Assembly: GCA_000708835.1 (NCBI GenBank)
Contig: DF237111.1
Location: forward strand, 62,001 to 126,000
Reading direction: 5' to 3'
DNA: 64,000 nucleotides
DNA from: Klebsormidium nitens
Taxonomy: Eukaryota > Plantae > Klebsormidiophyceae
The notes beneath the pieces are model-generated. The model was not told the DNA's origin, searched no databases, and worked only from the letters and a program-made list of their open reading frames with translations. Position 1 is the first letter of the stretch, and every line of letters starts with the position of its first letter. The translations under genes were made by a program, and so were the position numbers. This document shows, one piece after another, positions 3,641 through 47,472 of the stretch.

Positions 3641-6600
3641 ATGGTGAGTATTTCCTCCCTCCTTTTGTACAGTCGAACCGCGATTGACGCTCCCCTAGGA
3701 TATCATGGGGGCCAAAAGCAGTTGGTAAAGAGTCCAGGAATGCTCCTCTTCCAAGCTACGTTTGCGTTTGGAAGCGGCCAAGGTTTAGGAGCCACAGTTT
3801 CTGTCAAGGTTTACTGCAGATCCCTTGCCTCGTTGCTTCTCCCTCAACATGACCACAACCGACCCTTAAGGAGCAAGCAGTGCACTTGGGAAGGCTGGCT
3901 TCTTGCTGGAAACCCTCTTTCCAGAACCTGCCAGTTCACTGCAAATTCGCACTGCCCACCAGGTTTACATTTCTTCAAAGCTTGCGCTCTCTGCATACTG
4001 ATTTGAGCGCCCAGGGTGACACCTGTCTTGGCAACACTTGCTATGCAGGCTGGGAATACAACCTTTGAGGGGATTCCCGCTATTTTGATGGGGTTTTTCA
4101 CCAGCACTGCGCAAAGCGTCCCAGTGATCGAGCTCGGCTTCTACGTCCTGTCAGCAAACATCTTGCTGCTGAGCTGGACAACTAGAGCGGCGACTTCGGA
4201 CCCATCTGCAGTAAGCCCAATGACTAGAATGCGAAACAGTCTGAGTTCCAAGAAGAAGTGAATCACGTTCACCTCCACGTCTGAGTCCAGCAGGGGTACT
4301 TTGTGTTGCACTTCAGGGGCGAGGAAAAGGTTGCTTTCAGGTCATACTTATGTTCTTCCGCTCTGTCTTTCGAGCTTAGGTGCGACAATCTAGATCGTTT
4401 TCAGCTTGTAGTAGACTTTTCAAGCCCTGTTTGATCTGAACAATTTAGGGTTCTTGATTCCGACATTGAACCGGTCGCATATTGTTTTGCTGCCTTTGCT
4501 GACTCCTCCCTCTGCTTCTTGGTCTAAATCTCTTGGTTAACGAACACCACATCTATGCTATCAGGCTGTACTTTCATAAGCTCACAACATACCACAAAAG
4601 AATAGGTCATAACCCATAACAAAACAAAGCGTTGTTTCAGAGTTTCTGCAATCAAGGGCCACGAAATTTGACGTTCTTTTCTCCATATTTTTAGGCAGCC
4701 CACCGGCTCGGCGTTTCGATTGGCCGGCTTGCCCCCGACTTCAACGTGGGCTTTCTCCTAGTCTTTGCTGCGCTTTACTTCGGAGCGTCCCTATCTAGTT
4801 GGGGCCTCGCCTGGACTCTTCTGTGCCTGGCGCTGGTGACGTGTCCCAAGCCCATTGAGTGGGATTTTATAGCCGCGATCCTCAAGTCGACCTTCTTTGG
4901 CACGACCGTAAAGGCGGAAACATTCATGACCGACTTGTTGCGGATTGCGCGGGAGCTGGGTGTCAGACAGGGGCTGCCGCAAGGTAAGCAAAATCGATCA
5001 TCGTGCCATTCGATACACAATGGCTCAAGAATAATGGCATAAAGACAGGAGATGGATCAAAAGACGTCCATGAATGAGTCTCTGCAAATTGCAAGCGAGC
5101 CGGGTGTCAGACACGGCTGCCGCAAGGTAAGCAGAATCTGCTGAGACCTTGATTGGGAAGCAGCGTAAGAGCGGAGTTTGTCTGATGCAAGCTCCCCATC
5201 TGTCGTCGAGATCTCTCCGATATTAGCCATCCCATCCGTTTTAGTACTATCCTATAAAGCTGTAGGAGCGGTCAAATATTTATATGTCCTAAATTGTTCC
5301 TCAAAGTTTTTATGTAGCCTCTGGCCTGAAGATATCAAACGTACGCTTTTGTAGCTTCCTACTAAGACAGCTTTATCTTGCGAACAGGCGGGCCGGTTTG
5401 CAGTCGAATTTACGTGCCACTAAGGGCGGGGCCCATTTTTGTGGAACAACCAGACTGGTCAACCGGTCCCATGACGTGCAAACGTCTTTTCTGGATCGTG
5501 AATACGACAACTTGCGGTCGCCAGAGAACTCAAGCGAAGATTGTGGATGCAGATGCTATGGTGGATGTCGTCAAGTTCGAGCTGCCCTTTATGGCTCCGG
5601 TCTTCCTCCTAATCGACGCCCGCCACGTGCACTTCACCCACGTGGCGCCGTCGTGTGAGCTCTTCGAGAGCCTGTGAGTCTCCGTGCTTGAAGAAGCTGG
5701 GCTGACATCACGTGACCTGGTCGAACCCTCCGCTTGAGGTCATCAGTCTCGTCAGAGACGTCAGAAGTTTTGCGGTGGCCTTTGTTCGCCCTTCGTTGAC
5801 TTCAACGGCCATTGAAAGATACGCCAAGATAGGACTGAAATTCAGCAAACACTTTGTACACTCTTTCGATGCCTGGGCTCACATCAATGACTGGCAATCC
5901 TCGGTCAATCTAGGCTTGGATTCAACTGGGTTACACCCCGTCTAATTCGAACCCGGAACCTTCCAAAATTTCTATGAGGTTTGAACGGCACGCAATTACT
6001 TCGAGCAGAGTCCAAAAAGTTCTCAAAAAGGAGTTCTAACATATATTATCTTTGACGATCTGATACTCCTTCGCTTCCCAGTTGACACCTTGTTCTTCCG
6101 TCGGTTCTGACTGGCCGCTAACGTGATGCAAGCGAACGGTTTCTCGCACTCGCTGACGTCATAGTCTGCTGCTTTCAGGGCGGGAGACTGGTTCCTGGGG
6201 CCGAACACGCTCACGGCGAAGAGCCCCCCATTGAAGAACCCCCAGTGGCTGCTCCACCGGGCGCTGACGTCACCCATCAACACCGACCGCAACGGAATCG
6301 ACTCCATGATGGGCAGTATGTTGGTTCGGGCGCTCACCGTATTTAGCGACCTGAGCCGCGAGCTGCGGAAGAAGCACGGGAGCGTGATAGACTTGTGCGA
6401 CGAGTTTGAGAACATCATGGTGAGAGAGATTGATTCGAATCAGTTTCTCAAAGTGATTGTAGAGAGCTGCAAAGAAGAATACGAAGTTCGGGCCACGCCT
6501 CCCCTGCTTCGCACCCATGTTAATCGCCCAAGCATCTCATTATTGCACTGTCTACGCCAGAATCTGCTTATGATGGCTCACGATTATTCTTCTCAACAAC

Positions 6601-9600
6601 TCCTCTGCGATGGTTCGGACTGATTTTGAGGATTCGTAGCACACGCGTACATTTTTGAGGGTAAAGTAAGGCTTCCTTGATGGTCTGATTGCTCAGCTTT
6701 GATGATCAAGTCCCAAACTCCGGTGCTTGCCTCCCTGTGAGAGCACTTCGCATGTAAACTGTCTGGTAGACGAAAGGCAGATCGGCAAAGCGAAGGCCTT
6801 CCAATAAAGAGGCCTGCGTTCTGATTCCTCGTCCCCAAGCGACGCAATGTGCATTTTTCATAATCGTCGCGATCGAATCCGCATCTTCTAAAGCGTAGTG
6901 AGGAAGGAGCACGGAATCTCCTCGAATATTGAAACTTCCTCCTGCTCGTTTGATCACAGCGACGCCCTATGATTCTCAGAGTATCCTTTCGCAGGTGGCG
7001 GCACATCAAAGCGCCATCTTCGGTCAGAAGTACATCGACCGTTACCCCCACATCGCTGCTGACATCAACTTCACGGCAGCAAAGTATTTCTGCCTGTCTA
7101 ACACCGTCAACATGAAAGCATGGATGCCGTGGGAGTTGCTCCCCTTCATTCGGGCGCGAAAGCGCGTCTACAGCTCGCTTTTGTGGGCAGTAGAACACAG
7201 CGAGTCGCCGCTGGTTGCCATCGTCAAGAAAGCCCACGAGGAGGTGAGGACACATATCTGAACGTGGGTTACCTGATAGTAGTTCCTTTAACACTCTACT
7301 TATAGGGATAGACACGTGTTTAGAAACGTGTTTAGAAAGTCCTTTCACCTATAAAGAGAGGTCCGCTTCCGTGCTTCCAATCGAGGCCTCTGAGAGGACG
7401 GGCTAAGAGTGTCGGTATTTTGATCTTTGAGGAGATTTTCCAGTGGATAATGTAGGCAGTGTGCAGACCTTCAGCGGAGCATCGGACTCAGAACTACGAT
7501 TCAGAGCGTTCACAGCACTCGATACCTGCACTGCCAGAAAGCTTCAATTGAGCCCACATTAGCAGTGGGCTTCTTGTGAACAATATAATTCAAACGTATT
7601 CGTTTGTTAGATAGTCACTCAAGGGGAATGGCGTCCTACTCCAGAATGCTCCTTGGAGCACTAAACGGTACTCGGGTTTTGCGCGAAGCAGATTCGAACG
7701 AATTTTGTGTCAAGCAATGCGCCCAGTAAGTTAGCGCGCAGCCTCTACTTCCAAAGCAAAGAGCTCTCTCCTCCTTTTCTGAAACGCGTCCTTACCTGGT
7801 TGGCAGGGCAAGATAAGCTGAGAAGAGATGATGGGCACGTTCCTGCTCTTCACATATGCCCTGGCGCCTTCCCGTACCGTCGTATACGCGCTCGCCCTCT
7901 TATCGAGTTTGCCAAACGAGCACGACCGTATTGCCAAGGAAGTTCGCACGAGGTTAATTCCCTTGCTTAATATAAAGACGGGCAAGGTCGATCCGCGCGA
8001 GTGGGCACGTGGATGAAGGACCTGGACGACATGGATAACCTCAAGCGATGCGTGAGGTAAGCGATGACGTCAAAAGAGCATGGGTCACTCGAATCGCGAC
8101 GAGAGCAGAGTTGCGGAGGCTTCTATAAGAAGCGCTTCAGGTCTTCAGGCGACGATGGAGTCATCTATGAGAACGCCTCGTTCTTTCTGAGTTATCCGAC
8201 AGCTTTTCAACGAGGTCAGGCGGAGTGGCAGGTCACGGTCTGATGTAGACCAGGCAATTCAGAATCTCTAATTTTATCCGATCGAAACACTATTTCGAAA
8301 CGGCTCCGTGTCTGGTGGGCTTCAGGCAAAGCTCATGATTCTGACTACATTGCTTTAGAGGAAAGAGTAGGTTCGGGCAGAAAGGCTCGTGTCTCACTCT
8401 GCTCCAATACTTCCGAGAAATCTCGAGCGAACGCATTGCACATCTTTTCCTGCTTCCCTGCGTCAGGGAGTAGATAGATTTAAGCGAACAAGCTGCGAAT
8501 ATCTTTCTGCGTCTCTGCTTCAGGGAGACGCTACGTTTGTACCCCGGGGTTCCGCTGCTCATCCCGCAAGTTGCGGCCCGCGATTTGCGGGTGGGCTCCT
8601 GGGACGTCAACAGGGGCGCCATCATTTTTACGTCACCCTTTCTGTCGCACCGGGATCGAAACGTCCACCCGGACCCCGACATGTGAGACCGCTTCCTTTG
8701 CACAGCAAAAATGATTAAAGTCCCAATGTTTTTGCTTTGAAAGAAGATGTAAAATTGGCAGAAAGGGTGTCGCCAAGACATGTTTCTTTCGAGAAAATCC
8801 AAATCTCTCTCTTCAGCCCTACGGACCGGTCTCCACTGTGTGTCTGACAGTTCCTATAGAAGCGAAGCATGTGAGCTAGCTCTCTGAGGTCAAATAAGCG
8901 AGTGTTCTGTAATGCTGGAAATGAGCGCTGATGGTTTTCAGAGGTGCTCGCCTTGAAAGCACTTTTTCAAAATGCGTTTATATTCATCAAGCCTCCATAA
9001 TCTCGCCGCGTCTTTCACCTGACAGTTCGTACAGCTTGCTCCGTGTTACATTCCACTTGCTCCGACACAGCTCAGAACTCACGCTGACCACAAGAAGAGC
9101 TTTGAATAAACCCAAGTTTCCGTCGTCAGGTACGATTCGAGCCGCAGTCTGGAGACTGGCGCTCCGCTCCCTGACGGCACCTCCACATTTTTCCCCTTCT
9201 CCGTCGGCCCCCGTTCCTGTGCGGGCCAGTTTTACTCGGAGCTTTTCGTCCAAGGCGCTGTGGCTATCGCTCTTCAGGATCACGAATTTGAGGCGAAAGG
9301 GCCGGTGCCACCACCGGCTATGGTTGCGTTCTGTCAGCCTATGGCGCCCGCCTATGCGAGGATCAGGGCGGCCCCGAGTGTCGGGAAGAAGCAGCAACCG
9401 CAGGTGCGGGAAACGTTCCGCGATTTGAGCCCTTGATGTTTGGAAAAGTTTTTGAGGCTCCCTTTGAAATGGGCGCGGTGTCTTCTTCTGGACTTCAGTT
9501 TCCGTTCACTCGGTCTTTTTTCTGACGGCAATCCAGCTGCCCGAATCGCTCGTCGAATCAGATGCTTAATAATGCGTTACTTTCTGAACCCTCATTCTGA

Positions 9601-12600
9601 TCTGATTCCTCTCTTCTTTAGCAAAGCAGCAGTGGGGTTGGCTCCCAGTAATGGATTTTACACCCACCTCTTCTTGAACATGGCTTCCTCGCTTAAGAGT
9701 TTTCAAACGCGTTAGTCCATCCCGGACCTTTTACAACTCCCCTTCGTCTTCTGTACAGGTGTCGACTCCAACCGTCAGCAGCAATTCGCCGGTTGCGGAT
9801 CTAGAGTGCAAAGTGGAGGCGCCGCATCTGGAGAATGTTGACGTCATCACGATCCTCTTCGCGTCCACTCATGGCACGTCGCGGGCGTTCGCGGACCGGC
9901 TCGCTAGAAGTCTCCAAGAATCGGACGTCGCTGCGCTCGAGCCCGCTCCTTTCATCCGGGTACGTACCAGAGTTTGAGACCCGTTTAACGAATCTAGTGG
10001 GGCTTTGAAATTCCAACAGATTCTGGCAGGTCTTTGATATGAATCCTGTGGAGACAATTCGTGCAAAGACGTTTCTCTTTATCAGATCCGATCTGATTGG
10101 TATCGTGATTTGGACTATCGCGAAAGTTCGCCACGAATGATCCGGATGTTTGTATGTTGCTTCCGGGCTAAGTTCGCTCTCCTCACATAGAAACAATGGA
10201 GATCAGATTGAGATTGAGACCTTACCTTCTGTACTTTTACCAAGCTTTAATCAAAAGTCTCGTTTATCGGCTCCGCATGAGAACGCATCGCAGGTGTTCA
10301 AGAACCCGCTGACCTGACGTCCGCAAATCTGTCCGCAGGTCTGCGACGCCGCGCGCTACCAGCCGCCGGAGCTCGCGCGCGAGTCGCTCGTCATCTTTTT
10401 GGTGTCAACTTTCGGTCACAACCAGCCGCCCTACTCCGGGGCGGCCCTCAAGGCGTTTGTAAACGACCCCGGCACAAAACTACCCGGATTAACTTACACC
10501 GTTTTTGCGCTCGGCAACTCGGTTTACCCAAGCTTCTGCAGCTTCGGCAAACTGTTCGATAAGCGCCTCGCGGAAGTGGGCGCCCGGAGGCTGATGCCGA
10601 TTACGCTATGCGACGAGGTGGGCTGTTTTGTACGACGTTTCTGATGATTCTTAAATAGCTCTAGGAGAGTGTAATCTTTGCAGAACGCGATGGAGAATCT
10701 TCAAAGCGATCTGAGGTTCACAAGTTGGGTTTTTCTAGTTTGGGATAGCTCTTATATAGCCCTTGGAGAGTCCGAGTGTAGAGTAAAAAGTGGACCAACC
10801 GCGATCGTTCCGAAGTACGTTCGTCGGTCACGTTCTCCCGTTCAGCGAGAATGGCGTCTCTGATTCTTTCCGTGCGTACATTTTGGCGCAGATCGAGGAT
10901 CAGGAGGGGGCCTTTGTTGCGTTTCTCGACCGAGTGACCGAAGTCCTCTACAGCTCCTTGGAAGGGATCCCTTCGAGTAAGTCAACCGACCTGACTGTGG
11001 CGCGTTATGCACGCGTATCTTTTCTGAGTGTTGATCCTGCAAGGAAAATAAGCAAGGACTCAATGATCAAATTCACAACCAGCTACGCCTGGCGACAGGA
11101 TCGAGCGCTTGCACGCCTTCATTACTTGACGAGTTTTCAGCTTTTGCTCGGATTGGTTGAGACCGTTCTGGAAGGCTAAGCTTCCTCACTGTCAATCCCA
11201 GGTCCCGCCAGTGTGCTGCCGTCGTCTTCCGGCGCACCACGGACCGCTCGCCCGAGCGGAAAGACGAGTGTAAATAAGCACAAGAGTGACGTCACACGTA
11301 CGGTGAAGTCTGAGCAGCCCCTCGGTCCCCGCTTCCGGTTGGTTGAGCTGGGGAGGGGGCGCGTCGGACGTCAGCGCGGAGACAGCGACGTCAGCGAGGG
11401 ATCCCCCAAGGGCACCCGCGACAACCCTCTGGAGTTCCAGGTAGGCCACGTGTCGAAGTTCTTGCGACGAAGCTCGATTGCACCAGGCAACGAAGTTAAG
11501 GCACGAAGCAACGGTGTCATTGCTTTTCGAGAGATTCTTGTCATCAAGGAGGCAGTGAAGCGCGCTGAATTGCAGAGCTTTTCGTTTGGCTTCCAAGGTG
11601 GGACGAAAAAGCAGACGATTCCTGAGACCTCGTACCGTTCAGGACATTGGAAGAAGTGATCATATCAAGTGGCAAGAGACTTGGTGATTCATGATGTTCG
11701 CACCGCGGTTTTCGCTCTTCTAATCCGATGGAAAGGCCGATTTTTGGTAGCCAGATGTACTGGCTCCTTTGATCCAACGTTCCCGAATTCGTCCCGACTG
11801 TCCGAATTTGTGTCAATACTAGAATGTTCCTAACTACTGGTTCCAAAAATTCAAGAAAACCTCGTGAGCAAATGGCACCTTTTTATGCTTCGGAGATTTT
11901 CTGTGCAGGTCCTGAGCAACAAGTGCCTTCGCCCCGACACTACCCTGGGACAGGTCCGCAACGTCGCGCTGCGGATGCCTTCGGACGGTTCGATCTCGTA
12001 CCAGCCAGGAGATATATTCGTGGTGTACCCAGGTATGCTCTTATCCCGCCTCTAGTTACTCCGCTTGCCGACGCATGATTTTACTTGCAATTGAACCGGT
12101 GGATTCGTATTCGACCGGTGGAACCGTTTTTTGAGCTCCAAGACTGCAACATGACAGATCTGCTTTTTACATCATATTGCTGTTGCAGGAAAGATTTGCA
12201 AGGGGAGTACTGATGAACCCTTGAACAAGTCAAGGAGCGTAAGAGAAGGCGTCCTTGACAGCCAACAATTGAGTAGCATCAATTCAGAACAGGCTAGGTT
12301 CCAGACCTCTCCAGAGCAACTCGGATACACTGGGGTCTTCAGGCTGACATGATCCGCTATACAAGGGCTGCATTCAGTGGATTGGGCGTAATTTCTGCAC
12401 ACACAAACCTCTTCAATGAAAAATTCTCCTCTCAAGTTCATCTTCGACAAATTACCCGCACAAATCCTCAAACCATGCATCTCTTCTGCAGTGAACCGGC
12501 TCGACTTAGTCGTCTCTTTGGCAACACGCCTAGGCATCCAGGATCTTGACCTCGAGTTTGAACTGCGGCCTTTGGCCCCGGAGAAGGTTCAACTGCAATC

Positions 12601-15600
12601 GCCCTTCCCCGAGAGGATGACGTACTGGCTCGCGCTGACGTCATACCTTGCGATTCAACGGGTTCCTCAGCCCCACTTATTGCAGATCCTGCGGCAGTAT
12701 ACCGACGACTCGGAAGAGGTAAGACTTTGTGAGATCACCGACTTTACTCAGTCAGTACGCACGTTTCTGGCCTCTTGACACAACCGGCTTTTTTGTCCGG
12801 TAGCTGGGCGGATGTGTCAAAGCAAAAGTTCGGAAAGGCGGCGACGCCCTCGCTCGATTTTCGTGCAGACGTCGCCGGCGAAGTTTAGGGGCCGAATCTG
12901 CAGAGAGCAGTAAATGCGAACCCCATCGGACGATCCGCAGGGTTGAAGTTGGGGGATGCCCCCATCGATCGACGAATCCGAACTTTTCTTGCCGGGACCA
13001 TGAGCGTGCCTACTGACTGTACTAGGAGACAACCACGTGGCGCCTGCAAGGACTTTTCGTTCATACAGTCCGGTCTATGAATCCATCAGATTCAACTGAG
13101 AGACGCATGTTTCATCCTTTTGAACGAGTTCAACCCGAATCTGTTATCCAACACTTTGCTTTACAAACCATTTGAGGAGACCGACTGCCACGCTCCTGGG
13201 TTGGTCAGCTCGTTGGCCCTCCATCGACTAGAACAGAGTCTGCCTTCTTTTATGACGTCAGACCGTTATCATACCTTCCCAAACCCTTCTTTCCATACCG
13301 CTTCGCAGGCAGCCCGGCTCGCCATGCTGGCAAAAGGCGGTCCCAAGTACACGGAATGGGCTCTTGGAAGCCACTCTCTATTGGAGACGCTGTACCAGGT
13401 TCCCTCGTGCAAGCCGAGCGTTGGGCACCTCTTCGAGTGCCTCCCCCACCTGCAGCCGCGCATGTACTCGCTTTCCTCCTCGCCGCTGTATCTTCCGGGG
13501 GAAGCGCATCTCACGGTCGCAGAGGTAAATGCTGGAGTGTTACTCTTTGCGCTTGTTTTGGTCTCCAGCCTCTCTCCAGCCCTGTTCCACCTCCGGATTC
13601 AAAAAACCTGAAACCTGGCAATCAATTGCACGAATGGACTTCATACAGTACATTTCAAGCGCCGGAAAGAACGACTGCCGTGCCTAAAGGCGAAGTGCAA
13701 ATTATCCTTAGGTCTCCGCTGGTGGGTTGTTCAATCTCGGAAAATAAGGAAGATCAAGAAAGGGCGCAAGGATCTAAAATTGGGAGGTGATCACTTTCAA
13801 CGGAGCCCAATTGCCCACACGCCTCTCGACCCACTTGTATTCGCTCAACAGTAACTCAGCAACCAGATCCTAAGATCTTTACACCCCAAAGTGAACTCTT
13901 GAACCCCAATGTTCACCCACTAGTCTACCTCACCAGGTGATTTACCAATCCCACGAGCACGCGTGGCGGCGCGGCGTGTGCTCCACGTTCCTGGGAACGG
14001 AACGCATGATTCCGTCCTCTGCGGCGGACGACCGCCAGAAACTTCTCGGGTTTGTGATGCCCAACCCGGGGTTCCTTCTCCCAGAGGACGTCCGTACACC
14101 AATCATCATGATTGGCATGGGCTCGGGAATTGCTCCCTTCCGGGCCTTCTGGCAGGAACGGTTGGTTCGCGCCGAGGTGAGTGACGCTTCTCTAGAGCAA
14201 CCTGCTAGTTTTAGTGCAGCATCATGTGCAAGTTAGTCATTCTGCTACTAAGTGGAAAATTTTGAGTCAGTTAACACCGATTCTTGGCAGGAGTGGTTGG
14301 TTCGCGCCAAGGCAAGCCTCCCGGTCTACAATTCTTGTGTCGATACGACTGATGTTTCAAGAAACTCAGGACGTCGTTCTCTGTCTGCGGAAAGTAACAA
14401 TACTGGCTCAGACGCTGCCTCCAGTTTGCCGCGTGAATCGGGCATACGAGATGAGAACGACGAAACGAAAACGAGAGCCCTTGCGAGAACGAGTCAGCTC
14501 GTAACCAGTCCGTCTAATCTGACGTTCCAGTCTCAACGGCTTATCTTTGCAGAAACTTTGGTGAAAATGTTCAGAGATCCGGTCCCTGTTTGGTGACCAA
14601 AAAGCAGGAACCAAGTTTCGTGGCGTTGTTTACTCCTTCCAGTTGATATTCGCGGCGACCGCGACAGTGCTACCACTGCTATGCAGACGTCCGCGATCCG
14701 TTTTTCGAAGTGCTCCTTAATCCGCTGCTTTTAACCTGTAGGAATCAAAAAGTGGTGGGCAACTTGGGGATGCGCTGATGTACGTCGGTTTCCAGAGCAG
14801 CGTCAACTCGTGCTATTTGGACGAGCTGCAAGACGCAAAGGCGGGTGGCGCGCTTTCTAAGGTAAGGGTAACTGAAGTAACCCTAGTGGGTTCCAGTAAC
14901 CAGCCCAATCATACTCATTTTCAGCCAGGTGGCCGTCCACTTGTTGAGGTGTGCGACAGGTTCCGAAGAGAAGTCCGGTACTGGGGTGCCTTGGTGTCGG
15001 GAAGGAACGGTAAAGGTCTTGTCGGCTTGAAGGGTTGATCCATGGATTCGCGAAGGAAAATTCACCGTTGTGCAAGACACGTTGTTTTTAGAACAGGGAG
15101 CGCGTAGGATTGAGAACGTACTCATAGAGGGCTAGGAAAAATAGGGGTTCCGAGTTCTTCTAGGAATCTGAATTCAGGGTTCAGAGACCAAATAGGTCTT
15201 CGACTTTGATTACACTGCCAGCTCTGTCAAAGTACGTGCGGATATGCGCCATGCAAACGAAGTGCTGCGGTCAACGTTCAGAGACGTGGCTTAACTTTTG
15301 CGTCGCCAACAGTTACAATCAAAGGTTGAGGGCTTGTCGACTAAACAGGCTCCGAGAGTTCTTTCGCCGAAAATTTCATTCGTAAGCACGAGCCTGGTTC
15401 AATTAGCCACAGGGCAATACAACTTGACCGTACACGCTTTCAAAACCACAGTTTGGCACTACTTTGTGCAAGCTCTTCTGGGAGGACGCGGTTCCGCTGA
15501 GAGTCGCCTGTTTCCATATGCTTTTCTACAGCTGCGAGTGGTGTTGAGCCGTGAGGGAGAGCGCAAGTACGTCACGCACGCACTCGCAGAGGATCAGTGG

Positions 15601-16587
15601 TCGCTGTGGCACAATCACCTGAGCAAAGGGGCGGTGGTCTACATCTGCGGGACAATCGACGCCGCAAATGACGTCAGATCCACCATGCTGGATGTCTTGA
15701 AGGAGGTGGGGGGAACGCGTTCACAGTCGCAGAAGCTTCGAGACAGCAACGATCTGCGGCGATTGTGAATGAATCCAATCGGCGGAATGTAAACCAGTCC
15801 AATTGGCAGAAAGGGTGGAAGTGGGTGGCCTGCAAATGCGCGTAGAAAGGCAAGGGTTAATATCTAGTAGCAAGGGTGTTCCGTACTCGCGCTTTGAGTT
15901 GATGTTTTTGACAACCGACAAGAGTCGCTTCGCTTCGTCGGTCGCTTACCAGCGCTCAGGTAGTCGGCTTTTCTGCGTGAATTCTTTCAGATCCTGGCTA
16001 TCGGCGATCACTCAACGGGAATTACCTTTTACAACTCAACGGTGCTTCAAATTGCAGGCCGGAGGCATGGCTGAAGACGAGGCTGCAGCTTGGTTGGAAA
16101 GCGCTCGCGACAGTGGGCGGTACAAGGAGGAGGTCTTCGGCGAGAGTACCCAGTCCTACTCAAAGACACGGATGGAGGCACGACTCCGGAAAGCAAGGTA
16201 CGTTTGCGATCTGTCGTCTCGTTATGATTAACTAAAAGTCAGCCCCGTGGTTGCTTTACGCACAAGCGAAAACCCTGTCTGACCTTGGAAGCACGTGTCA
16301 AGCTTTCAAAGGGAGCCTCTTCGTAGATGGAAATTTTGCAGAAAGTATAAGAAGCTTGGCCGCTATGGTTCTGCTTTTTGCACGGTTACCAAAGCTTCTA
16401 GGATTTTTTCGACCTTCTCTTGCCCAAGACGTACAATACTGACCGCTTTTCCCGGCCCCCTCCGATCAAATTGGTGAACATTTGTGCTCACGCGTTGACT
16501 TGCAGGGCAAAGCTCCGCACTGCTTTCGCCCTCCTTGGTGCGAAGGGGATTCAGCGCATCTTGGAAACCGCTCCACCAGACCTTTAG
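3641..16587 (+). CDS. Cytochrome P450 - diflavin (FMN/FAD/NADPH) reductase fusion; carries an in-frame TGA and a 1-nt frame break in this assembly
   Basis: Exons: ATG 3641-3643 (ATG|GTGAGT; alternative ATG 4043), 4049-4210, 4695-4983, 5388-5673, 6179-6419, 6995-7243, 7807-8056, 8524-8682, 9130-9403, 9759-9959, 10339-10617, 10892-10976, 11202-11440, 11909-12032, 12492-12718, 13309-13524, 13937-14176, 14742-14861, 15532-15705, 16058-16197, 16506-16587. All introns are GT-AG and phase-compatible except for a break inside 7807-8056. P450 motifs: WLLHR (WxxxR), RETLRLYP (ExxR), HRDRNVHPDPD, FPFSVGPRSCAG (heme Cys 9218-9220). Reductase motifs: ASTHGTS, STFG, ALGNSVYPSFC, LQPRMYSLSSSP, GVCSTFL, GMGSGIAPFRAF, SREGERKYV, VYICG, RYKEEVFG. 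First and last exons are less certain. Confidence 0.9.
5102..5137 (+). repeat. Intronic echo of P450 exon end plus donor
   Basis: gggtgtcagacacggctgccgcaag|gtaagc copies 4958-4995. Confidence 0.9.
14285..14316 (+). repeat. Intronic echo of reductase exon end (donor GT to GC)
   Basis: tggcaggagtggttggttcgcgccaaggcaag vs tggcaggaacggttggttcgcgccgaggtgag at 14150-14181. Confidence 0.85.
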
Positions 16588-17528
16588 ACGACGATACGCT
16601 GCTGAGAAGCATACCTCCGAGTCTGGTCGTACGTTCAGCTTTGGAACCTACTACTATCCTGGCGCGAAAGGATTGTTCTTGAACCAGCCTTTTTCAAGCA
16701 CTTGTTGGCGGAGACTCAGCCGTACTGGTCGTTGTATACGGCCCCGGAACAATCCTGTGTTTCAGATTGGATTCACGGTGGCATGCAGCGGTAACAGCTG
16801 ATGCTACCCAGGGGCTCCTTAGGGGCCCGCTCCCAATTTCGGTGACTGAAGCCTCGATCATAGGTTTGCAGCACATGGCATGCCTACTATGGTGACTGAA
16901 AAGATGTAATAGCGAAAGGTTGAGCCAGAGCTTCGATCTGGGTTTTGCGTAGCTTAATTGCAGATATGCATGTCCGATCGGACCACATATTGAACGTACT
17001 GGCCCGGGCTGTCCGACAACGACACGGTGCATGACGCCACGGTGCGGCTTCACAGTATAGCGTACAGCCATGGCCGCAACGAACGAAAACTTTTGAATCT
17101 CAACCAGCATGCACGTGTTGCGCAGTCATATGCATGAGCGAACTTCAGTTTGGAAGAGTGGGCAACCATCATTGAAGTTGTCCGACTTACCGGCTGGCGC
17201 ATCCGACAGTTTGCAAAGCTATTCTGACCGGATACTGGCACTGACAACATGCTTGCATCATGGCATGCCGCGCAGGCTCCATGGTTGCTCAAACAGAAAT
17301 TTCAAAAGTGGTGTCAATGAGGGGCCTGTGCGCCATGAGCCAGACACAGAACAACCACATGGAAATTGACTCTGACCTTCTCAGCATTCATCTGAACACC
17401 AGTACTGACATTCAGAAAAAGGCGTGGCTTGACTGTATATGAAGCGGTTTCCGGCCTTACAACACTGCTCGACACGGTAACATTCACACCTGTACCGACA
17501 CTACGACTCAGTTCGCTACTGGATCCCC

Positions 17529-20500
17529 TCAGCTTGCGTCCATCGCATCCGTTGCCACTAGCGTGTCGCTCTCGTGCTGCACAGCATTAAACTTCTCCGC
17601 TAGAGTACCGGTCCGAACCACACCACTCAGGAACGTCTTAAACTTAGCGCTGCTCGTCTCCGCATCCGGGATCTTAGCGAGCGAGTGAATGGCCCTCAGA
17701 GCGCTTCGAATCATGTCCTCGTTCCGGTCCACTTCCTGCTTCACGGCGTCCGTCTTCACCTTCTTGGTCACCGTTGCTTGCAGAGGCTCCACCAGCGCAT
17801 CCAACTCTGCGGCAAAGCGTGGAGTTGAGAGTTGAACCGGGACGTGCCCTTGTTTGTCAAAACACCCAATCTAAATCCTACGGCTGTCAAAATCGCTGCG
17901 CTGACTTAAAAAGCGTTTGGTTGGAGCTTGCTACCAAGCTGCACCGGAACTCAGCGCTTACAAAATTCTTTGCTGTTGGAACGACCAACCGTGCTTTTTC
18001 TGGAAGATTCGTTGTTCAATCCGGTTGATAAACGTGAGCTGCAGGCCATCTTCTCGAGAAGAACTTCCGAACCAGGTTTCCAAGATCCTTTCTGATGTTT
18101 TAAGGTCTGCATAGCCTGCACCAGTTCTACACTTTGCCAAGCCGCAGGGTAGAAGACTCGTCATCAGAATTCCCTCAGCATCACATAAGCTTGGCATCAC
18201 ATTACGGATATGTACTAACACCCTACTCAAAGAGCAGCGTGACATCACGCTCACCTGCGACAACCGCCGGCCCACATGTGACCGCGAGCTTGGACAGGAT
18301 GAGGTGACACGGCATCTTGACGTCAGCGTGATCCCCGAGGCCGCTCACGAGGTACGGGTTGATGAAGCGCGACGGGTCAATGCGGTCCAGGCACGCGTCG
18401 AGTAACGTGTCCATGCACTCGAAGGCCGTCTTCCGGATTTCCAGGCCGTCGTCGATTGTGTGCTTGAACGGGCCTAGGTCGACCACCCTGTAAAGGTTTG
18501 CGGCAAAGGGATGAGAACTTGGTTCTTGACGATGGGCCTTGAAAACGATCTGCTTTTCGAAGGGGCTTGAACGCCTGTGCTCTTAGATATGAGAGCGCTT
18601 TGGCCTGATGCAGTCAGGACGCATAAGAAGGGGCTTCAAGCGAAACGCCTCACTTCGAGATCGCATAATCGGGCTACTCAAACACCGATCGCCCTTGCAA
18701 TCAAAGAACGGGCAGAGGGGACGAAAGGCACTGCCTGGGACCAAAGTTACCAAACCAGACGTTTATAGTGATACGAATCGTAAACCCTACGTCCCCAAGC
18801 TTTGCAAACGCGATCGCACCTGATTAGCTCCTCCTTGACAAGTGTCAGGTCGTACAACTTGGGCCGTATCGAACTCATGGACGTTACTTCACTTTTGAGA
18901 CCAAGACCACTAGAACAGCTTAGACCCGAATTGCAAACTCTGACCCACCTGATGAGCTTCTTATTAAACAGCGTCAGGTCGATATAGCTTCACCAGTTTT
19001 CGAACCCTCAGGCACGCCAATCATCCTTAACATCCGCCGGAGACAAAAGCACTGACGTAGCTCACACCCTGAACTTCAAACCCAACCCAATCCAGAAATC
19101 TTAGCCAACCCAATAGTAGCTATGACCCACCTGATGAGCTCTTTCTTAACCAGCGTCAGGTCGTACAGCTTGGGCAGCAGCCCCGGGAGGTGATCCGCCA
19201 CCAGCCCGGCCTTGTTGTGCGCTGCCGTGCTGAGCGCCGACACCGTCGCGCGCCGCACGTGGCGGTCGGAATCTTCGATCAAGCTCAGGAACTCGGCGAT
19301 CGACGCCTGGATGAAGGAATCGACGGCCTGCGGACCCTCCACGATAGTGAACTTGAGGGCTGTCACGACGGTGGCGCGCGTGAACGCGGACGGGTTCTTG
19401 GTGTGCTCCTGCGCAGGGTTTGCGGGGTTGGCGTTAGCTTTAGAGCAAGTAGGACGAGTCTTTGGAGTGATCTTGTGCACGGTTAGACTGGCGGGGGTAG
19501 GGTGAAAATGAAGTGCAGTATGTTCGTTTGTTCCGTGGTTTTCACCTACTGTGTTTGGTGTACTCTTACGACAAAAGAATCAAAGATGCACGGTCTTCAT
19601 GCCTTTTTTCGATTCTTTTATGTGTGCTTCCTGCCGTGATGCGCAGCAACGTGGACGCTCTGAAGGAGCTTCGGGTGTCTGAGTTTCGTGGTCGGAGTGT
19701 TCAGTCCAGTCGTTTCATTCATTCGTTGCGGAGGTTTCGTAAGCGGATTTGACAAGCTTCAATCCTCACAAATTAAGCGGAAATCTGTTCCGGAGCAGAC
19801 GCAACTTCTTTCAAGACTCTTCAAACAGCTGGACGGAGCAAAGCAATCTGAGTTCACGGCTTGGACTCTTTTCGGAACAGGAACTCTGTTCCCGAAGAAG
19901 CGATGTATCCGTAGATCAAAGCCGCTGCCCAACTGGTACAATCACGAGTACGTTATGCTCAGCGGTCATGTTCTTACCTGGAGGTCCGGTACAATCCTCG
20001 CGGGCTCGATAAGCGCCAGCTTCCCGAGGCACTCGGCGACGACGTTCCGCACGCCCTCCTCCTCGCTCTCGCAGTGGGAGAAGAGCAGCCGCAGGATCTT
20101 GTCCACGTCAGCAGACTGGAGCTCCACCTGGCGGGACACGTGGACGGGCTGCCGGGCAATCACCTGCAGACAAAGGGAGAGACTATTTGAGGATGTTTCT
20201 GAGGAAGCAATCCAGGGAAGCAATCCAGGAAAGCCAGCTGCGCTGCCCCCTAAATTGGTGTTTCTCACCAGATTGTCCTAGCGGACGACTGAGAATTGTG
20301 ACTTTCGAACAAATATTGAAAAACTTGAGAGAGTTTGAGAGAGCTCCGCACCCAACCTGACGCTTTCGTCTATGAGAACGGGGTGCACTAAGAACAAGAA
20401 TGGCTCTACCCTTGCCGAGTCGAGCTTCGACAACTTGCAGGGATAAACAGCCTTTGGTCGGATCAAAATTCAAGAGCGACTGTGCGTTAAAGTTGCCGGG

Positions 20501-23500
20501 CGAATGCAGCGGGCACCTTACCTCCTTGAGCGAGTGCAAAAGCAGGTATTGCTGCTTGGGCTGCGCGTCAATTTGCGCAAGGATGAAGCCCAGGTACTTG
20601 TGGAGGTTGCCGACCGCGATGTTGCCCAGCGAGTAGGAAGCCGCGGCCTTGATCTCTTCGCTTGGAGACCTGCGGAAACGTGCAGATTATAGGTTGAGTG
20701 TCTTTGAAGACGGTCAGGGAACTTCAACCATAGAGAAAAAGGCTCAAAGGATATGTCCTGAATTCAGAAGAATCATCGATCTTCAAGCAGTCGGCGTTGC
20801 AACCATGCAGGCGAATAAAAGGCGCAGGGCTATTAGGAGATTGAAAACGGTCTAGCAAGCTTTTAGGAGCGTGGAACGAAGTGCGTGACCGGTAACGACA
20901 CCTTATGCGCTGTTGCAAGGAGACGAGGCTCCAGCGAATCAAATCGCAACCAGCTAAGGGCCGGATGACATTCCCAGTCCTTACAAATCCAACCATTCGC
21001 CAGTCCTGCGCTTCCTCCTCAGATAATCCACGAGGAGTTAAGTAGTGCGACATCAGCGATAAGGCGTGAACTGAAATGGGCAAAAGGTTACGTTTCTTCA
21101 CGTACCCGAACGCGCTCGTGACAATCCCCTCCACGTCCGCGTGCTTGCTCAGGTCCCGCCGCCGCCCGATCTCGCCCAGCGCCAGCAGGCTCAGCAGCTG
21201 CACCGGCTCTGCGCCCTTCGCCCCCGAGTCCCGCAAATTTTTGATCAGCGTCTCCACCGTCGATTTCACTTTGGCATCCCCGGCAGCCGTACACAAAACC
21301 GCCACGCACTGCGCGACCGAGTGGTATGCTTGCTTGCCGGCCGGGCCAGTGCCGGTGGGAGAGCCCAAGGGGGCGGTGATGCCGGAAGAAGAACCGGCTG
21401 CCGAGCCGGAGGGTTGGGGCTTGGCCGACGCAAGGAGCGCGCTGAGGAGAGAGTCGAAGCTGGCGGTGTTGCTCTGGACGAGTGCGGCGAAGAAGGCCTG
21501 GAGGGTCTGCAGGGGCGGAGAGGAATGGGGGAGTGTGAGTCAAGGGCGTTGTGAAATCGAGAAGCAGTTTGGCTGTTTGCTACGTTGCTCAAGCAGTGAA
21601 GAGACGGTTGCTTGAGCATATTTGCATCTGATTGATGTCTCCATTGGTATCAAAGAAGAGCTTTCAGCGGCGCCTCAAAAAGATCGCTGCGACAGTAGTA
21701 TGTTGCGGGTCTCTCGGGAAAAGGCTTGAGTGACCCCTCAGGTGTGACGGCACAGCACATTGACTCTCTTCGATAGCAACAGCGGATGAGCGTGCAACTA
21801 CAGAAGCGGCTCTACGCGAGCAACTCTTCCAACTCATTTTACACACCCAAGAAAAGGACAACAGATGCTTGGCTTTCCGCGGACCGACCTGGAGTGCCTG
21901 CCCCTGCAGCAACGAGCTGCGCACGAGCAGCAGCGTCTGCGGGAGGACCTTGTCCCGCACGGCGCCGCCCGCCGCCTGCGGCTGCTTCGCGACCATGCTG
22001 ACGCACAGCGACAGCGCAGACGCAGCCATCTGCAGGTCCGAATCGCTGACGAGGCCCGACAGCTCTCCAACGATTGCCTCGATGCTCGGGGCGTCTAACT
22101 GGGCACTGTAGTTGGTGGCGAGGGCGTCGAGCGTGGAGAGCGCCGCGAGGCGGAGCGCCCGGTTGGCCTTGCGGAGGAAGGAGGTGAGTTCGGCGACGGC
22201 GGGGGCGAGGATCGGGGAGAGGTCGACGTGGAGGGGCGAGCGGGCGATGGTCTCGAGGGCCTGTAAAAGGACGATATCTGTATGTTTTCAAGATGTCTTC
22301 AAGTCCTTGAGCGTCAATATGAGGGTTACAATTCTCCAGATCGTGCTTGAAATTGAGTGCAACAAAATGAATCCTGCAGAGCATTGACCGACGGCGTGTT
22401 TCAAAAAGCTCCTTGGAAAGTACTCCCTGCTTTCAGCTACATCGCAGAGTTGTAAGTAAATGCGAGGCGGTGTTCTTCCACAATCCAGTTAATAATGGAG
22501 GGCAATGTCGAAACTACGCGAAGCCAGATCAAGTCTCCTTGGACCTAGAAGTTTCAATCCAACCCGATACTTTCACCGCAGTCGATTCAACCCACCTTGA
22601 CAGCTGTCAGGCGCGTAATCTCATTCCGGAGGCGGTCCAGCAGCAGGTTCAGGCTAGTGGGCAGTTCCGACTGGAGCTTATCCCCCAGGATGGAGATGAC
22701 GAGCCCCGTCGCAATGATGGCCGACTCCTTCACCTCCTGGTCCTGGTCCTGGGCGGTCAGCCGCTTCTCCACGGCGCCATAGATCGGCCGGACGTACGAC
22801 TCGAAGGCGAAGCTCTGCAGGCAAACAAACGGTCCATCATTGTATCCCGATCCGACGACGGGTTCCAACACTTTCGGCCTTCTGCAGAGCAACCTGGGTA
22901 GAAAGCAGAAAAGGCAGACCCAGGCTCGAAGAACGTTGACTGCCGCGAACATGGCGGCCCTTTTTTAAATCAAAAAAGGGGGTCTCTCTTTTTCCTTCCA
23001 GCAAAAGTTACAGCAGGACAGATTGAGTGCGCCCTTTACTTCAAGCGGAGGTAGTGCTTTTAATGCTTGGAACTGCCTTCGAAAAGGTCCTACACAAGGC
23101 ATCTTCTCACCGTGACAAAGGGAAGCGGCAGTCACAGTGGAACTCTGACCGGAGGTCAAAGATTTCAGAAAGGGATGACATTGAAAAAGGACCTATTCTC
23201 ACCTGGCCAGAGGCTGGCCGAATGACCTTCACTAGCTCGCCAGTCACTCGCAGCGCCTCGGATGTGACCTTGTAATACCGCTCCCCGACTGCTGCCAGGA
23301 CAGGCGATGAGAGGGCCTGCAAGATGGATACGGGCTGAGAACTTGCTCCTAATAGGACCGTGCAAAAGACTCCGCTGGCTGGACAGACAATTGCTTCGCA
23401 CGCGGACCAACCCCCAAATCAACGCCGAATAAAATCTATACCCTCAGGTGAAGCACCGGTTCGAAATGACGCCGTTACAGGAGTGGTAAAGCTGTGTAAG

Positions 23501-26500
23501 CGTGCCAGGACATCTGAGGCTCGCTTCAAAATTTGCCAGTCCAAGGTCGCTTGAAAAGCACGGAATCTTCTGCCAGTCCAAGGTCGCTCGAAAAGCACGA
23601 ACGGGGCTACCTGGGCGTGGTAACGGACGGCCAAGCTTCTTTACCCAAGGAGAAGCTTTCTTTGCCGAGGGTAATCGAGTTCTACCTTGATGTGGGGCTG
23701 GAAGACCTCCGGGCTGTGGGACGAGAGCACGAGGCGCGTGAACACGAGCGCTTCGATCTTGAGGCTGGAGTTGGAGGACCGGTCTTCCAGGGCACGCTTG
23801 ATGCCCGGGACGAGGGACGCGAAGTGGTCGGCGAGGCTGTTGGGCAGGACCACCACGAGCTCCCGGAGCACGGAGAAGACGCCGACCTGCAATGGCGAAT
23901 CTCAGCGCCCTCAATGTGGCGCGGTTTATAACAAGACGGGTTCCCTTACAAGACGCTGTGGTAGAACGAGACTGCTTTCAGTGTGGTTTGCCAACTGTAA
24001 CCGGACTGTGCGGACCTCGAGAATATGGTGTGGAGTAAGTTACTGGCTATGATGCACTTGCTATTGATCGAAGCGTTTGCGTTCCTGACAAGCAGGAGAA
24101 GCAGTTTAGTCACTTAGTGGAGACAACCCTGACAAGCAGGAGAAGCAGTTTAGTCACTTAGTGGAGACAACGCTGCCGCGTAAAGGAATGTTTGGACATC
24201 TTACTCTGGTCTTGACAGACTTGTGCTTGAGCTGCTTGTTTAGCGAACGCACAAGCTTGGGCACTTCTTGTTGGAGGAGGTACAGGGGGCTGCAGGAGCG
24301 CAGAAGAATCAGCACTTCTTCATTTGCACGCATGGTTGTTCTTTGTACGTTCACATCGACCGGACCGAGACTCGCAGAGTTCTGTACCAAAGTATTGCGG
24401 ATCCCCCAAGCAAAAGATACGTGACTGAGCCTTTTTACTCATCAAATGCATAAGCATCCCCGACGATTAGCACCTTACCAGCCGACTCATGTTGGCAGGT
24501 TCTCAAAGACGAGGAGTTTTGGTGTCTGCCTGAGTTGCGGATCGATGGACTGTGTCATTGGCTGCACGAATGGTCGCCTACCTCGAAGGAGTGAGTTCCC
24601 CGCCCTTTGTGATGAGCCCCGTCTGTCGAAGAAGGTCGCTGAAGGCGTTGAACAGGTCAATCTGCAGGACAGACAAACGGCGTTGTGTACAACTGGCACA
24701 GATCTGTAAAGGTGCAGAACTACATACTGCGAGAAGGTCGGCAATCGAAGAGGAAGTTGCGCATCCAGGCACTTTCTAAATTGCACTGGCTGAATCGCCG
24801 ACATCTCGTGGTCTCCTGCTATTACTCAGCCCTGTTTGTCCGTGGTTGGAATATCTCACCTTTACATTCTCTTCCCGCTCCTTGAAGCGGTTGATCAGCT
24901 CAGGGCATGCCTGCACAGCGTGAGCGGCGGTTTTGAGGGTGCAAGTCCACAACCCCTGATCGATTCGAGACTGATGTGCAAGAGGAGCCGACGATGATAC
25001 AAGAACCTCTTGCTCGAAAGGAAGTCTACTGTCAGCAGAAACGTTTAATCTGGAGTCGTCTGGAAAAGTCGACCCCCCCTGGCCATCTGATTCTCTCTCA
25101 GAAAAGCAAGCACCTACCTTGTACGTTTTGAATTCTCTTCTTGAAGGTAGATCCTTTAGCTGGATCTACAAAGCCATCACGCACAACTAACGAGAGAGCG
25201 TCAATTACAGTTGGTCAACAAACCCAGGTACTGCAGTCCCTCACCTTCTGATAGAGCAGGGCAATCATCTCGGGCCTTGACGTGATCACCGCCGACAGCG
25301 TCTTTGCAGCTGCCCGCCGCACCTTCCAGCTCACGTCCTCATCATCGCTGTACTCGTCTGCGCTCTCCCTGCAGATCCAAACGCGCAGATTCAGTGTTTC
25401 AAATTACTCCCAGATGTTGAGTCGATCTTACCTTGTGTTACTCGATCACAGAGAAAAGACCTCTGTCGCAAGCAAGACCCTTCCGCGTGCCGCTTCACGT
25501 CTCCAAGCAACGGATGACAGCACAGTGCCTTGTCCTAGCTAACCGAGTCGGAGCTTCGAGAAAGGTTCGCTCGCTGTCGCCCAAACAGCCTTCATTTTCT
25601 TTCTCTTCTCAAGTCCAAGCTGAAATCAGGGGCGACGCCAAAATGTCGCTCATCGTCCTCTTCCTCCTCCTCCTCCTCATCCTCGTCTATGTCATCGCTG
25701 TGCTTCGGGTCGTAGCTCGAGAACACCAGACCACAAACTAGAGGTGGAATCAAAACGAATGCTGCTCACTCGTCCTCTTCCTCTTCCTCCTCCTCATCTC
25801 CCTCCTCTTCGTCCTCGTCCATGTCTTCGCTGTAGTTCGGGTCGTAGCTCAGAAACTCGAGTGCTAGGTTAAGGATCGCGTCCGTGTGCTCCGACACGTC
25901 GCGCGGGCAGCGCAGCACGAAGCTCTCCAGCGCCTGCAGGCTGTACTCGCGCAGCTCGTCGTCGTTCTCGGAGGCCTCCTTGCAGTATGTGATCAGCAGC
26001 AGTACAACCTCGCTCAAGTGGGGCCCGAAGCGATACCCAACGGAGCGGCTGCAAACAGAAGGAATATCTGCGTTGTGAACTGGCGAGGAATTCCGACATA
26101 TGCACGTGTGTTTCGATGATTGAAACTGAGCGACAGAAAGTGCATGTTGGAGGCCACGGCGAAACTTCGGGTGCACTGAAGCAAAAGAGTGGTGGCCCAG
26201 GATGTGAACCGGCAGAGCGACCGTTGAAACTGTCAACATCTGCAACATTCATGTGTGCTTCTTACGATGCGCCAATATTGCCGCCCTGGCAAGGCCCAAT
26301 TACAGATGCGAACGACCTCCATTGGCATCTCACGAGCACACTGAATTGGTGCTCAACTAAGATTCTCGTTGGTTAGCTCAAGAACCTCGTTTGGAAAGAA
26401 AGACCGGTCCCACTTACCTCAAGGATCCGATTGTCTGGATGTACGTTCTTATCATGTCCACTTTGAGGGACGTGTCCTTCAGCTGCTCGACTACCGCCTT

Positions 26501-29385: not shown

Positions 29386-33192
<3,807 letters not shown>

Positions 33193-46618: not shown

Positions 46619-47472
46619 TGTCTACCCCAACGATCATCGGTGTTTCTAGGCTTTGATGAGCACATGAGGTCTTAACAAGAGCTACCGCCAGCTCTTCTGG
46701 GTCTGAAATGCAAAATTCTTTCAAAAGCAAAGGTGGCGATCCAGTAGCGCGAAACAACTACTATTTTGGTCAGTGCCCCGAACAGCTGTCAGGGCGTTGC
46801 ATATGCAGTCCGAGGCGAAACAGGGATCTCAAGACTTTCTCCAGAGCTATATCGCAGCATCACTACCACCAGTTGGCTATCAAGGTGTAAAGCGGCGCCA
46901 CAATTTGCCACCATCCGGAAATGAAGTGACGCCCCCTGATCCCCCCACAAGCAAAAGGACGCTTTGTAACTAGGCTGGCATGAAAGCTGGCAAGAAGGGC
47001 CGGCGGAAGTGAAATGTGATTCTTATGACAGCGTTACCGAACGGTAACGGAGCAGTTTCCTTGCTCGCAAGGGGTCTCCAGCTTCGAATGCAAGTTCAAC
47101 TTCGTGGATGACCAGAAATTTGGACCGACTCAAAATTGTCTGGCAGGCTCGCCTTGGTGTTCATTTCTCAAGCGCTCTGCCATTGTGGTGGTACGGTGTT
47201 GTACACAAGGATACTAGAAATCTGTAACTGATTGGGTTTGCCATTGAGTGAGTCCAGAGGAGCAAGTCAGAGCATCTTCTTGTGTCCACCTGCCCGCATC
47301 CTTTGTCAACAGCATTGATTGCCTCTTAATCAATAAAGTTTTCATCGAGCTCTGCGAAAGAAACCCTGCCATACTTGGTCAGGAGTCTTTTTTTCACTGT
47401 TGCACGAGGGACCCGCTCACCGTTAGATCCGCATAAGCCATTGTCCCGGTTATTAAAGGCACCCTCGTAGCA

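Follow-up and report, generated by a model that had tools for sequence, protein, structure and literature searches.

To our knowledge, characterised natural fusions of a cytochrome P450 to a diflavin reductase are confined to bacterial CYP102, to which BM3 (CYP102A1) belongs, and fungal CYP505, to which P450foxy belongs, both of them workhorses of biocatalysis. Eukaryotic algae figure in a 2022 review of algal P450s only with systems that use a separate cytochrome P450 reductase (CPR), and searches of the open-access literature yielded no account of a P450-reductase fusion occurring naturally in algae. Among diflavin reductases, a C-terminal tail, a calmodulin site, a beta-finger and an autoinhibitory insert occur in nitric oxide synthase (NOS) only, the NOS tail extending 21-42 residues beyond the CPR-type terminus, and all members apart from CPR are soluble (2012 review, PMC3509625). 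In this study, we describe a gene at 4043-16587 on the forward strand of a 64,000-nt stretch of Klebsormidium nitens DNA (contig DF237111.1, positions 62,001 to 126,000; hereafter the window), which joins a P450 domain to a complete diflavin reductase across 20 coding exons. In its intact form the gene probably specifies a membrane-anchored, self-sufficient monooxygenase of about 1,290 residues, of which the window holds a copy most likely inactivated in the recent past. A preliminary description of the window had proposed a single spliced P450-reductase gene distinct from CYP102 and CYP505, and the fused architecture and the distinctness were both upheld by the analysis reported here.

Gene structure and the spliced transcript of a relative

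Relatives of the gene were sought using the heme exon as query in an exhaustive phmmer search of 1.8 billion representatives, which returned just two close clusters, both consisting of short genomic open reading frame (ORF) fragments; the long matches were tandem P450s or unrelated proteins. The contigs of the two clusters led to four genomic loci, namely L001, a close relative (about 90% amino acid identity) with upstream synteny to the window, L004, a second close relative, and L002 and L003, from a more distant species. A further sequence, L005, is a metatranscriptome contig obtained by a pattern scan of metagenome contigs. This contig is 4,377 nt long, spliced, and contains a single 1,286-aa ORF with an in-frame stop three codons upstream of the ATG. 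Its identity to the L003 exons is 99.6-100% and to the L002 coding exons 92-98%, and relative to genomic L002 and L003 all introns are gone, including the P450-to-FMN intron between the heme exon and the first flavin mononucleotide (FMN) exon. Pfam analysis of the L005 ORF identified p450 (PF00067; 88.7 bits, E = 4.8e-25), Flavodoxin_1 (E = 1.2e-25), FAD_binding_1 (E = 4.8e-34) and NAD_binding_1 (E = 3.1e-9). Four domains thus lie in a single spliced ORF, and the fused architecture is therefore established at the RNA level in a relative. The 3' untranslated region (UTR) of L005 contains TGTAA, which we take to be the green-algal poly(A) signal and which is the single hint of a green-algal origin that emerged from the analysis. 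The relative's transcript also has a non-coding first exon (L002:2246-2328, L005:1-92), lying roughly 1.8 kb upstream of the exon with the ATG, and the relative's gene therefore has an intron in its 5' UTR.

Exon boundaries in the window were determined from conservation against L002 and L001 plus splice-site scoring. All 19 introns have GT-AG borders, the intron phases are those of L002, and seven of the nine exons mapped in L001 are equal in length to those of the window. Identity between the window and L001 is 82-89% in exons and 52-61% in introns (61% in intron 8, 52-58% in the others). The region has a G+C content of about 50%, with short stop-free stretches spread over the three forward frames. 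Pfam matches within these stretches were to p450 at 8474-8683 (K-helix, ETLR) and in the heme exon (FPFSVGPRSCAG), to Flavodoxin_1 at 10318-10641 and to FAD_binding_1 at 12392-12775 and 13081-13608.

The coding sequence begins at ATG 4043, also present in L001 and L002, and ends at the stop 16585-16587, in agreement with the gene end proposed earlier. An in-frame stop lies upstream at 4004-4006; the proposed start at 3641 could therefore be joined only through an unsupported intron and was abandoned. The length was also revised from about 1,347 codons, the exons summing to 3,878 nt or 1,292 codons when the lesions described below are read through. The 1,292-residue read-through product, free of lesions outside exon 6, can be aligned with L005 over its full length at 62% identity. 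From the N to the C terminus it comprises a hydrophobic region, a divergent P450 domain, a Pro/Lys/Ser-rich linker, an FMN-FAD-NADPH reductase (FAD, flavin adenine dinucleotide) and a 45-residue tail. In L005 the four domains are present in one ORF and one mRNA, and the window has the matching exon structure and phases.

The two halves are joined by intron 8 (9404-9758), which is a canonical phase-0 GT-AG intron (CAG/GTGCGG ... TCTGTACAG/GTG), as the preliminary description had stated; L001 and L002 have it at the same position and in the same phase. If this intron is retained, the P450 frame meets a stop at 9434-9436, 10 codons on, and RNA from the window organism is lacking at the junction. 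Both facts would suit an arrangement of two neighbouring genes, the first a P450 whose frame ends at 9434-9436 and the second an independent reductase, with the fusion an artefact of read-through or assembly, yet we consider this very improbable: in the L005 transcript intron 8 has been removed exactly and the ORF is continuous. The peptides read through past the exon 8 donor differ in sequence and length among the window, L001, L002 and L004, the junction splice sites and phase are conserved, and the halves are just 355 nt apart, at an intron-like identity of 61%. In the window and in L002 the first reductase exon lacks an in-frame ATG; only L001 possesses one, located four codons upstream of the acceptor, so that none is common to the three species, and the earlier claim that the reductase has no separate start holds. 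Four RNA runs of the window organism, covered over 6600-12500, yielded three contigs, all small, of which one confirmed the splice 9959/10339 within the reductase half.

Exon 6 and the state of the window copy

Exon 6 (7807-8056), which encodes the I-helix (YALAPSRT), is broken in the window, where it measures 250 nt compared with 251 nt in L001, L002 and L003. An in-frame TGA is present at 7819-7821, and the same codon is AGG (Arg) in those three loci. Downstream of it, 7993-7994 reads CC where the relatives have CCC, a 1-nt deletion that shifts the frame into a stop at 8014-8016; past the deletion the conserved frame resumes unaltered. Two 31-mers were sampled from a 62-base probe centred on the deletion, and both were found in four DNA runs made from what is probably the source sample. 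The deletion is therefore present in the reads rather than introduced by polishing, as judged from two 31-mers in one sample. No splicing rescue for the frameshift was found in exon 6, and the first 20 kb of the window contain no second match to this exon. The window copy is most likely a recently disabled allele, unable to make the heme-binding or reductase parts. Compared with L001, its ratio of nonsynonymous to synonymous substitution rates (dN/dS) is 0.135 at a dS of 0.54, and a relative-rate test with L005 as outgroup gave 22 lineage-unique residue changes in the window against 22 in L001; any inactivation must therefore be recent. The fused architecture proposed in the preliminary description stands; that the window ORF is broken by the TGA and the frameshift was not clearly stated there.

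It is unlikely that the window copy works after all, with the TGA skipped by splicing, the deletion an error or confined to one haplotype, and the full fusion made. The splicing in question would use a weak alternative acceptor, AG 7826-7827, which starts the exon at 7828 and removes the TGA in frame. Its use would fit the first 27 nt of exon 6, whose identity to L001 is 70%, compared with 86% in the remainder of the exon, as though they were drifting, and a working copy would also fit the intact state of all other exons, the low dN/dS and the lack of any surplus of lineage-specific changes. However, this acceptor has a splice score of 6.2 against 8-10 elsewhere, and splicing would favour the conserved CAG at 7804-7806, 21 nt upstream of it. 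The frameshift has no such remedy among the splice variants considered, the 31-mers across the deletion are found in four DNA runs, and exon 6 has no coverage in the four RNA runs.

Several observations weigh against the interpretation of the locus as a fusion gene for a self-sufficient monooxygenase, recently inactivated in the window. In the four RNA runs no read or contig of the window organism spans 9403/9759, and the transcript proof of the fusion comes from a different species, about 62% identical at the amino acid level. Of the three RNA contigs, two continue unspliced through exon borders, one at 8622-8824 (across donor 8682) and one at 10761-11030 (across acceptor 10892 and donor 10976); they derive from unspliced RNA or from DNA carried over into the RNA libraries. 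Expression is very low, and some of the RNA signal could derive from pre-mRNA or DNA. The check on the deletion comprised two 31-mers from one sample, probably the one that was assembled, and both lesions fall within one exon of an otherwise well-conserved gene, where they could be bypassed in part through the acceptor at 7828. Lastly, the I-helix is atypical. The motif (A/G)Gx(D/E)T(T/S) is not matched, YALAPSRT standing in the window, L001 and L005 in the place of AGHETTA of distant P450s, at a helix break (model residues 247-248), and oxygen may not be activated in the normal manner.

We nevertheless retain as the probable interpretation a fusion gene whose window copy has been disabled. 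The broken copy serves as a caution that a recent pseudogene can escape exon-by-exon motif reading; the intact orthologous ORF of L005 can be expressed directly for functional tests.

The P450 and reductase halves

The P450 half occupies the first eight exons. Exon 1 (4043-4210) contains the start ATG and an N-terminal hydrophobic segment and ends at a GT donor. Exon 2 (4695-4983), in which hydrophobic segments are followed by the beginning of the P450 fold, is flanked by AG and GT and has 55% amino acid identity to L002. Exon 3 (5553-5673) and exon 5 (6995-7243) are likewise flanked by AG and GT, and each is equal in length in L001. Exon 4 (6179-6419) carries the WxxxR motif (WLLHR) and is 91% identical to L001 and 61% to L002 at the amino acid level. 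Beyond exon 6, exon 7 (8524-8682) encodes the K-helix with ETLR (Pfam p450, E = 1.6e-9), and exon 8 (9130-9403), also matched by Pfam p450, encodes the heme-thiolate loop FPFSVGPRSCAG together with the last part of the P450 domain and the first part of the linker, with amino acid identities of 91% to P0001 and P0011 and 70% to L002. The WxxxR motif, the ExxR of the K-helix and a Cys-ligand loop of the FxxGxRxCxG type are therefore all present.

Within the first 125 residues lie one to three hydrophobic segments; hydropathy rises above 1.5 in peaks spanning residues 25-46, 68-95 and 86-107. Exon 2 shows a 12-nt in-frame length difference between the window (4695-4983) and L001 (L001:5659-5935); four residues of its hydrophobic segment (GLAW / AAWA), present in the window and L005, are missing from L001. 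The Pro/Lys/Ser-rich linker that connects the heme domain to the FMN domain is 22% conserved, and no obvious amphipathic or calmodulin-binding helix was seen in it, no dedicated predictor having been run.

When the two halves were searched separately, the P450 domain proved to be an orphan. Used as a query on its own, it retrieved nothing beyond weak matches to generic P450s, of which the highest-scoring reached 55 bits and covered 15% of the query. A word-index search found no relative among long proteins, although this search is weak and missed even NOS and CPR. The AlphaFold model of the domain, with a predicted local distance difference test score (pLDDT) of 70, has a P450 fold, and its top 50 structural matches are 14-19% identical to it, the best being CYP184A1 with oleate, CYP3A4, CYP46A1 and CYP51; no CYP102 entry is among these 50. 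The P450 domain thus has no recognisable relatives beyond the generic fold, with identities of 19% or less among the top 50 structural matches. With regard to the whole protein, no annotated full-length relative was found in word-limited searches that missed even NOS and CPR. Eight ORF translations from the window had no exact match in the protein collection, and a scan of viral contigs gave no match.

The reductase half begins with exon 9 (9759-9959), which encodes linker and the start of the FMN domain, lacks an in-frame ATG and has an RNA-confirmed donor at 9959. The FMN (flavodoxin) domain continues through exon 10 (10339-10617; Pfam Flavodoxin_1, E = 2.1e-18), whose acceptor is confirmed by RNA, and ends in exon 11 (10892-10976), which was placed by conservation and splice sites. 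Exon 12 (11202-11440) encodes a basic, S/T/P/G/A-rich hinge from the FMN to the connecting domain; this hinge is 46% identical to L002 and 45% to L005 and is modelled with a pLDDT below 50. Exon 13 (11909-12032), also placed by conservation and splice sites, opens the FAD and connecting domain, and the connecting domain continues in exon 14 (12492-12718; Pfam FAD_binding_1). Exon 15 (13309-13524; Pfam FAD_binding_1, E = 2.6e-14) contains the FAD-binding region (RMYSLSSS), and exon 16 (13937-14176), 67% identical to L002 and matched by Pfam NAD_binding_1 in L005, contains the FAD/NADPH region (GSGIAPFRAF). Exons 17 (14742-14861) and 18 (15532-15705), again assigned from conservation and splice sites, encode the NADPH domain. 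By alignment with neuronal NOS (nNOS), exon 19 (16058-16197) carries the motif RYKEEVFG, with Phe where CPR has Trp, and the beginning of the C-terminal tail. Exon 20 (16506-16587) encodes the remainder of the 45-residue tail and the stop.

Against solved structures, the reductase half scored 251 bits with CPR and 235 with the nNOS reductase in phmmer, followed by 177 with sulfite reductase flavoprotein (SiR-FP) and about 147 with BM3 (chains 131-150). Foldseek comparison of its model (pLDDT 76) gave E = 2e-46 for CPR and 1.7e-45 for nNOS, each at 28% identity, the longest structural alignment being that to nNOS, with a template modelling (TM) score of 0.68. The FMN domain alone matched E. coli SiR-FP at 78 bits, cyanobacterial NOS at 72 and CPR at 65; it spans 153 residues against 145 in SiR-FP and aligns to CPR as well. 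In the alignments to SiR-FP and CPR, the 42-45-residue autoinhibitory insert of the nNOS/eNOS type is absent from it. The last 137 residues are closest to nNOS, with RYKEDVFG falling on RYHEDIFG and the tail past the CPR terminus (TY...RLRS) aligning too. The 45-residue tail, a helix in the model, is 78% identical between the window and L005 and is the best-conserved segment. The reductase is equidistant from CPR and NOS, with a NOS-like terminus, and is clearly not of the BM3 type.

Judging from the known behaviour of diflavin reductases, NADPH would reduce FAD and FAD would then reduce FMN, after which the FMN domain would swing to hand electrons one at a time to the P450 heme in the same chain. 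The P450 would oxygenate a lipophilic substrate at a membrane. Gating of this electron flow in the manner of NOS is suggested by the tail together with the Phe at the FAD-stacking position.

The shared domain order raises the alternative that the fusion is a diverged member of CYP102 or CYP505, perhaps acquired by horizontal transfer. A language-model feature search points the same way, placing fungal bifunctional P450/NADPH-P450 reductase clusters first with a score of 0.97; this search recognises architecture only, towards fungal CYP505-like clusters. We regard such an origin as most improbable. Among the matches listed, BM3-type chains match the reductase half only (query 841-1240), with none to the P450 domain, and they stop where the tail begins, at query position 1240, 2-3 residues from their own C-termini. 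The gene has 20 coding exons and that tail, its reductase scores far lower with BM3 than with CPR or nNOS, the top 50 structural matches of its P450 lack any CYP102 entry, and the phmmer scan of 1.8 billion proteins reached no relatives beyond the two small clusters. As a CYP family requires P450-domain identity of at least about 40%, membership in CYP102 or CYP505 proper was rejected in view of the 14-19% identity among the top 50 structural matches and a reductase module that is not of the BM3 type.

The fusion gene of the window, probably inactivated here, may instead represent an undescribed family of membrane-anchored, self-sufficient P450s carried by a small clade of green algae, a proposal we make tentatively. 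In this family an orphan P450, forming a new CYP family with an atypical I-helix, would have been fused independently of CYP102 and CYP505 to a reductase that shares the tail and the FAD-stacking Phe of NOS. In the reductase, a relative of the module recruited by NOS could have survived, and the tail could gate electron flow to a P450, which would be a first. If true, the independent algal fusion would be a third origin of the self-sufficient design, and it would include an orphan P450 family with a conserved I-helix that is devoid of the usual oxygen-activation motif. A CPR-like reductase with a tail otherwise restricted to NOS would also bear on the origin of regulated electron delivery in NOS.

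Neighbouring genes and comparison with known systems

An exon of an NAD-dependent epimerase/dehydratase-family gene is located at 1151-1639 on the reverse strand, head to head with the fusion gene. This pairing was considered as a functional clue and rejected, being kept in L001 and not in L002. Downstream of the fusion gene, a multi-exon HEAT/ARM-repeat gene on the reverse strand (17500-28500) includes at 21667-22287 a weak Pfam match to CAND1-like TPR repeats, below the curated cutoff. Exons of an rRNA adenine dimethylase of the RrnaAD/DIM1 type are found at 30745-32251 on the forward strand. Three long stop-free stretches lie on the reverse strand: 595 aa at 42837-44621, encoding a pentatricopeptide-repeat protein (PPR_2, E = 2.7e-34) that is unusually long and intron-free compared with its neighbours; 459 aa at 45245-46621, Ala/Ser/Pro-rich and without a Pfam match; and 466 aa at 54816-56213, with an F-box, leucine-rich repeats and Sel1 repeats.

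In common with BM3 and CYP505, the fusion has, within a single chain, a P450 followed by FMN, FAD and NADPH domains, and electrons would presumably pass from NADPH through FAD and FMN to heme, so that a separate redox partner would not be needed. In contrast, its P450 domain is unrelated to theirs beyond the fold, and it is encoded by 20 coding exons in an alga-like nuclear genome. BM3 is soluble, whereas the algal fusion has N-terminal hydrophobic segments; its reductase is nearer to CPR and NOS than to that of BM3, and it ends in a 45-residue tail with Phe rather than Trp at the terminal aromatic position.

CYP184A1 of Streptomyces avermitilis, in complex with oleic acid (PDB 7WZL/7WZM), ranks first among the structural matches of the P450 domain and second in the PDB by sequence, with 54.6 bits against 55.2 for a sterol 14-alpha demethylase. 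By analogy, the match gives a weak hint of a lipid substrate. Unlike the fusion, CYP184A1 is a bacterial stand-alone P450, and the match is at 18-19% identity with a TM score of about 0.6 on a model of pLDDT 70.

CPR is the best overall sequence match of the reductase and, in structural terms, a match equal to nNOS, and it has the same layout of FMN, connecting, FAD and NADPH domains. Stand-alone microsomal CPR starts at its own ATG with an N-terminal anchor and ends at the FAD-stacking Trp. The fusion reductase differs from it in having no conserved start codon of its own, in about 30 additional hinge residues, and in the Phe and long tail that take the place of the terminal Trp-Ser. The FMN-loop motif of CPR is YEHFN; that of the fusion, YPSFC, resembles those of SiR (YEFFC) and syNOS (YEHFC).

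Like nNOS (PDB 1TLL), the fusion has its reductase downstream of a heme-thiolate oxygenase and carries the RYxEDxFG motif with Phe, followed by a tail beyond the CPR end. Overall identity of its reductase to nNOS is no higher than to CPR (28% each). The heme domain of the fusion is a P450 and not a NOS oxygenase (PF02898), Pfam detecting p450 only in the N-terminal half, and in place of the nNOS arrangement the fusion has a poorly conserved Pro/Lys-rich linker and an FMN domain free of the autoinhibitory insert.

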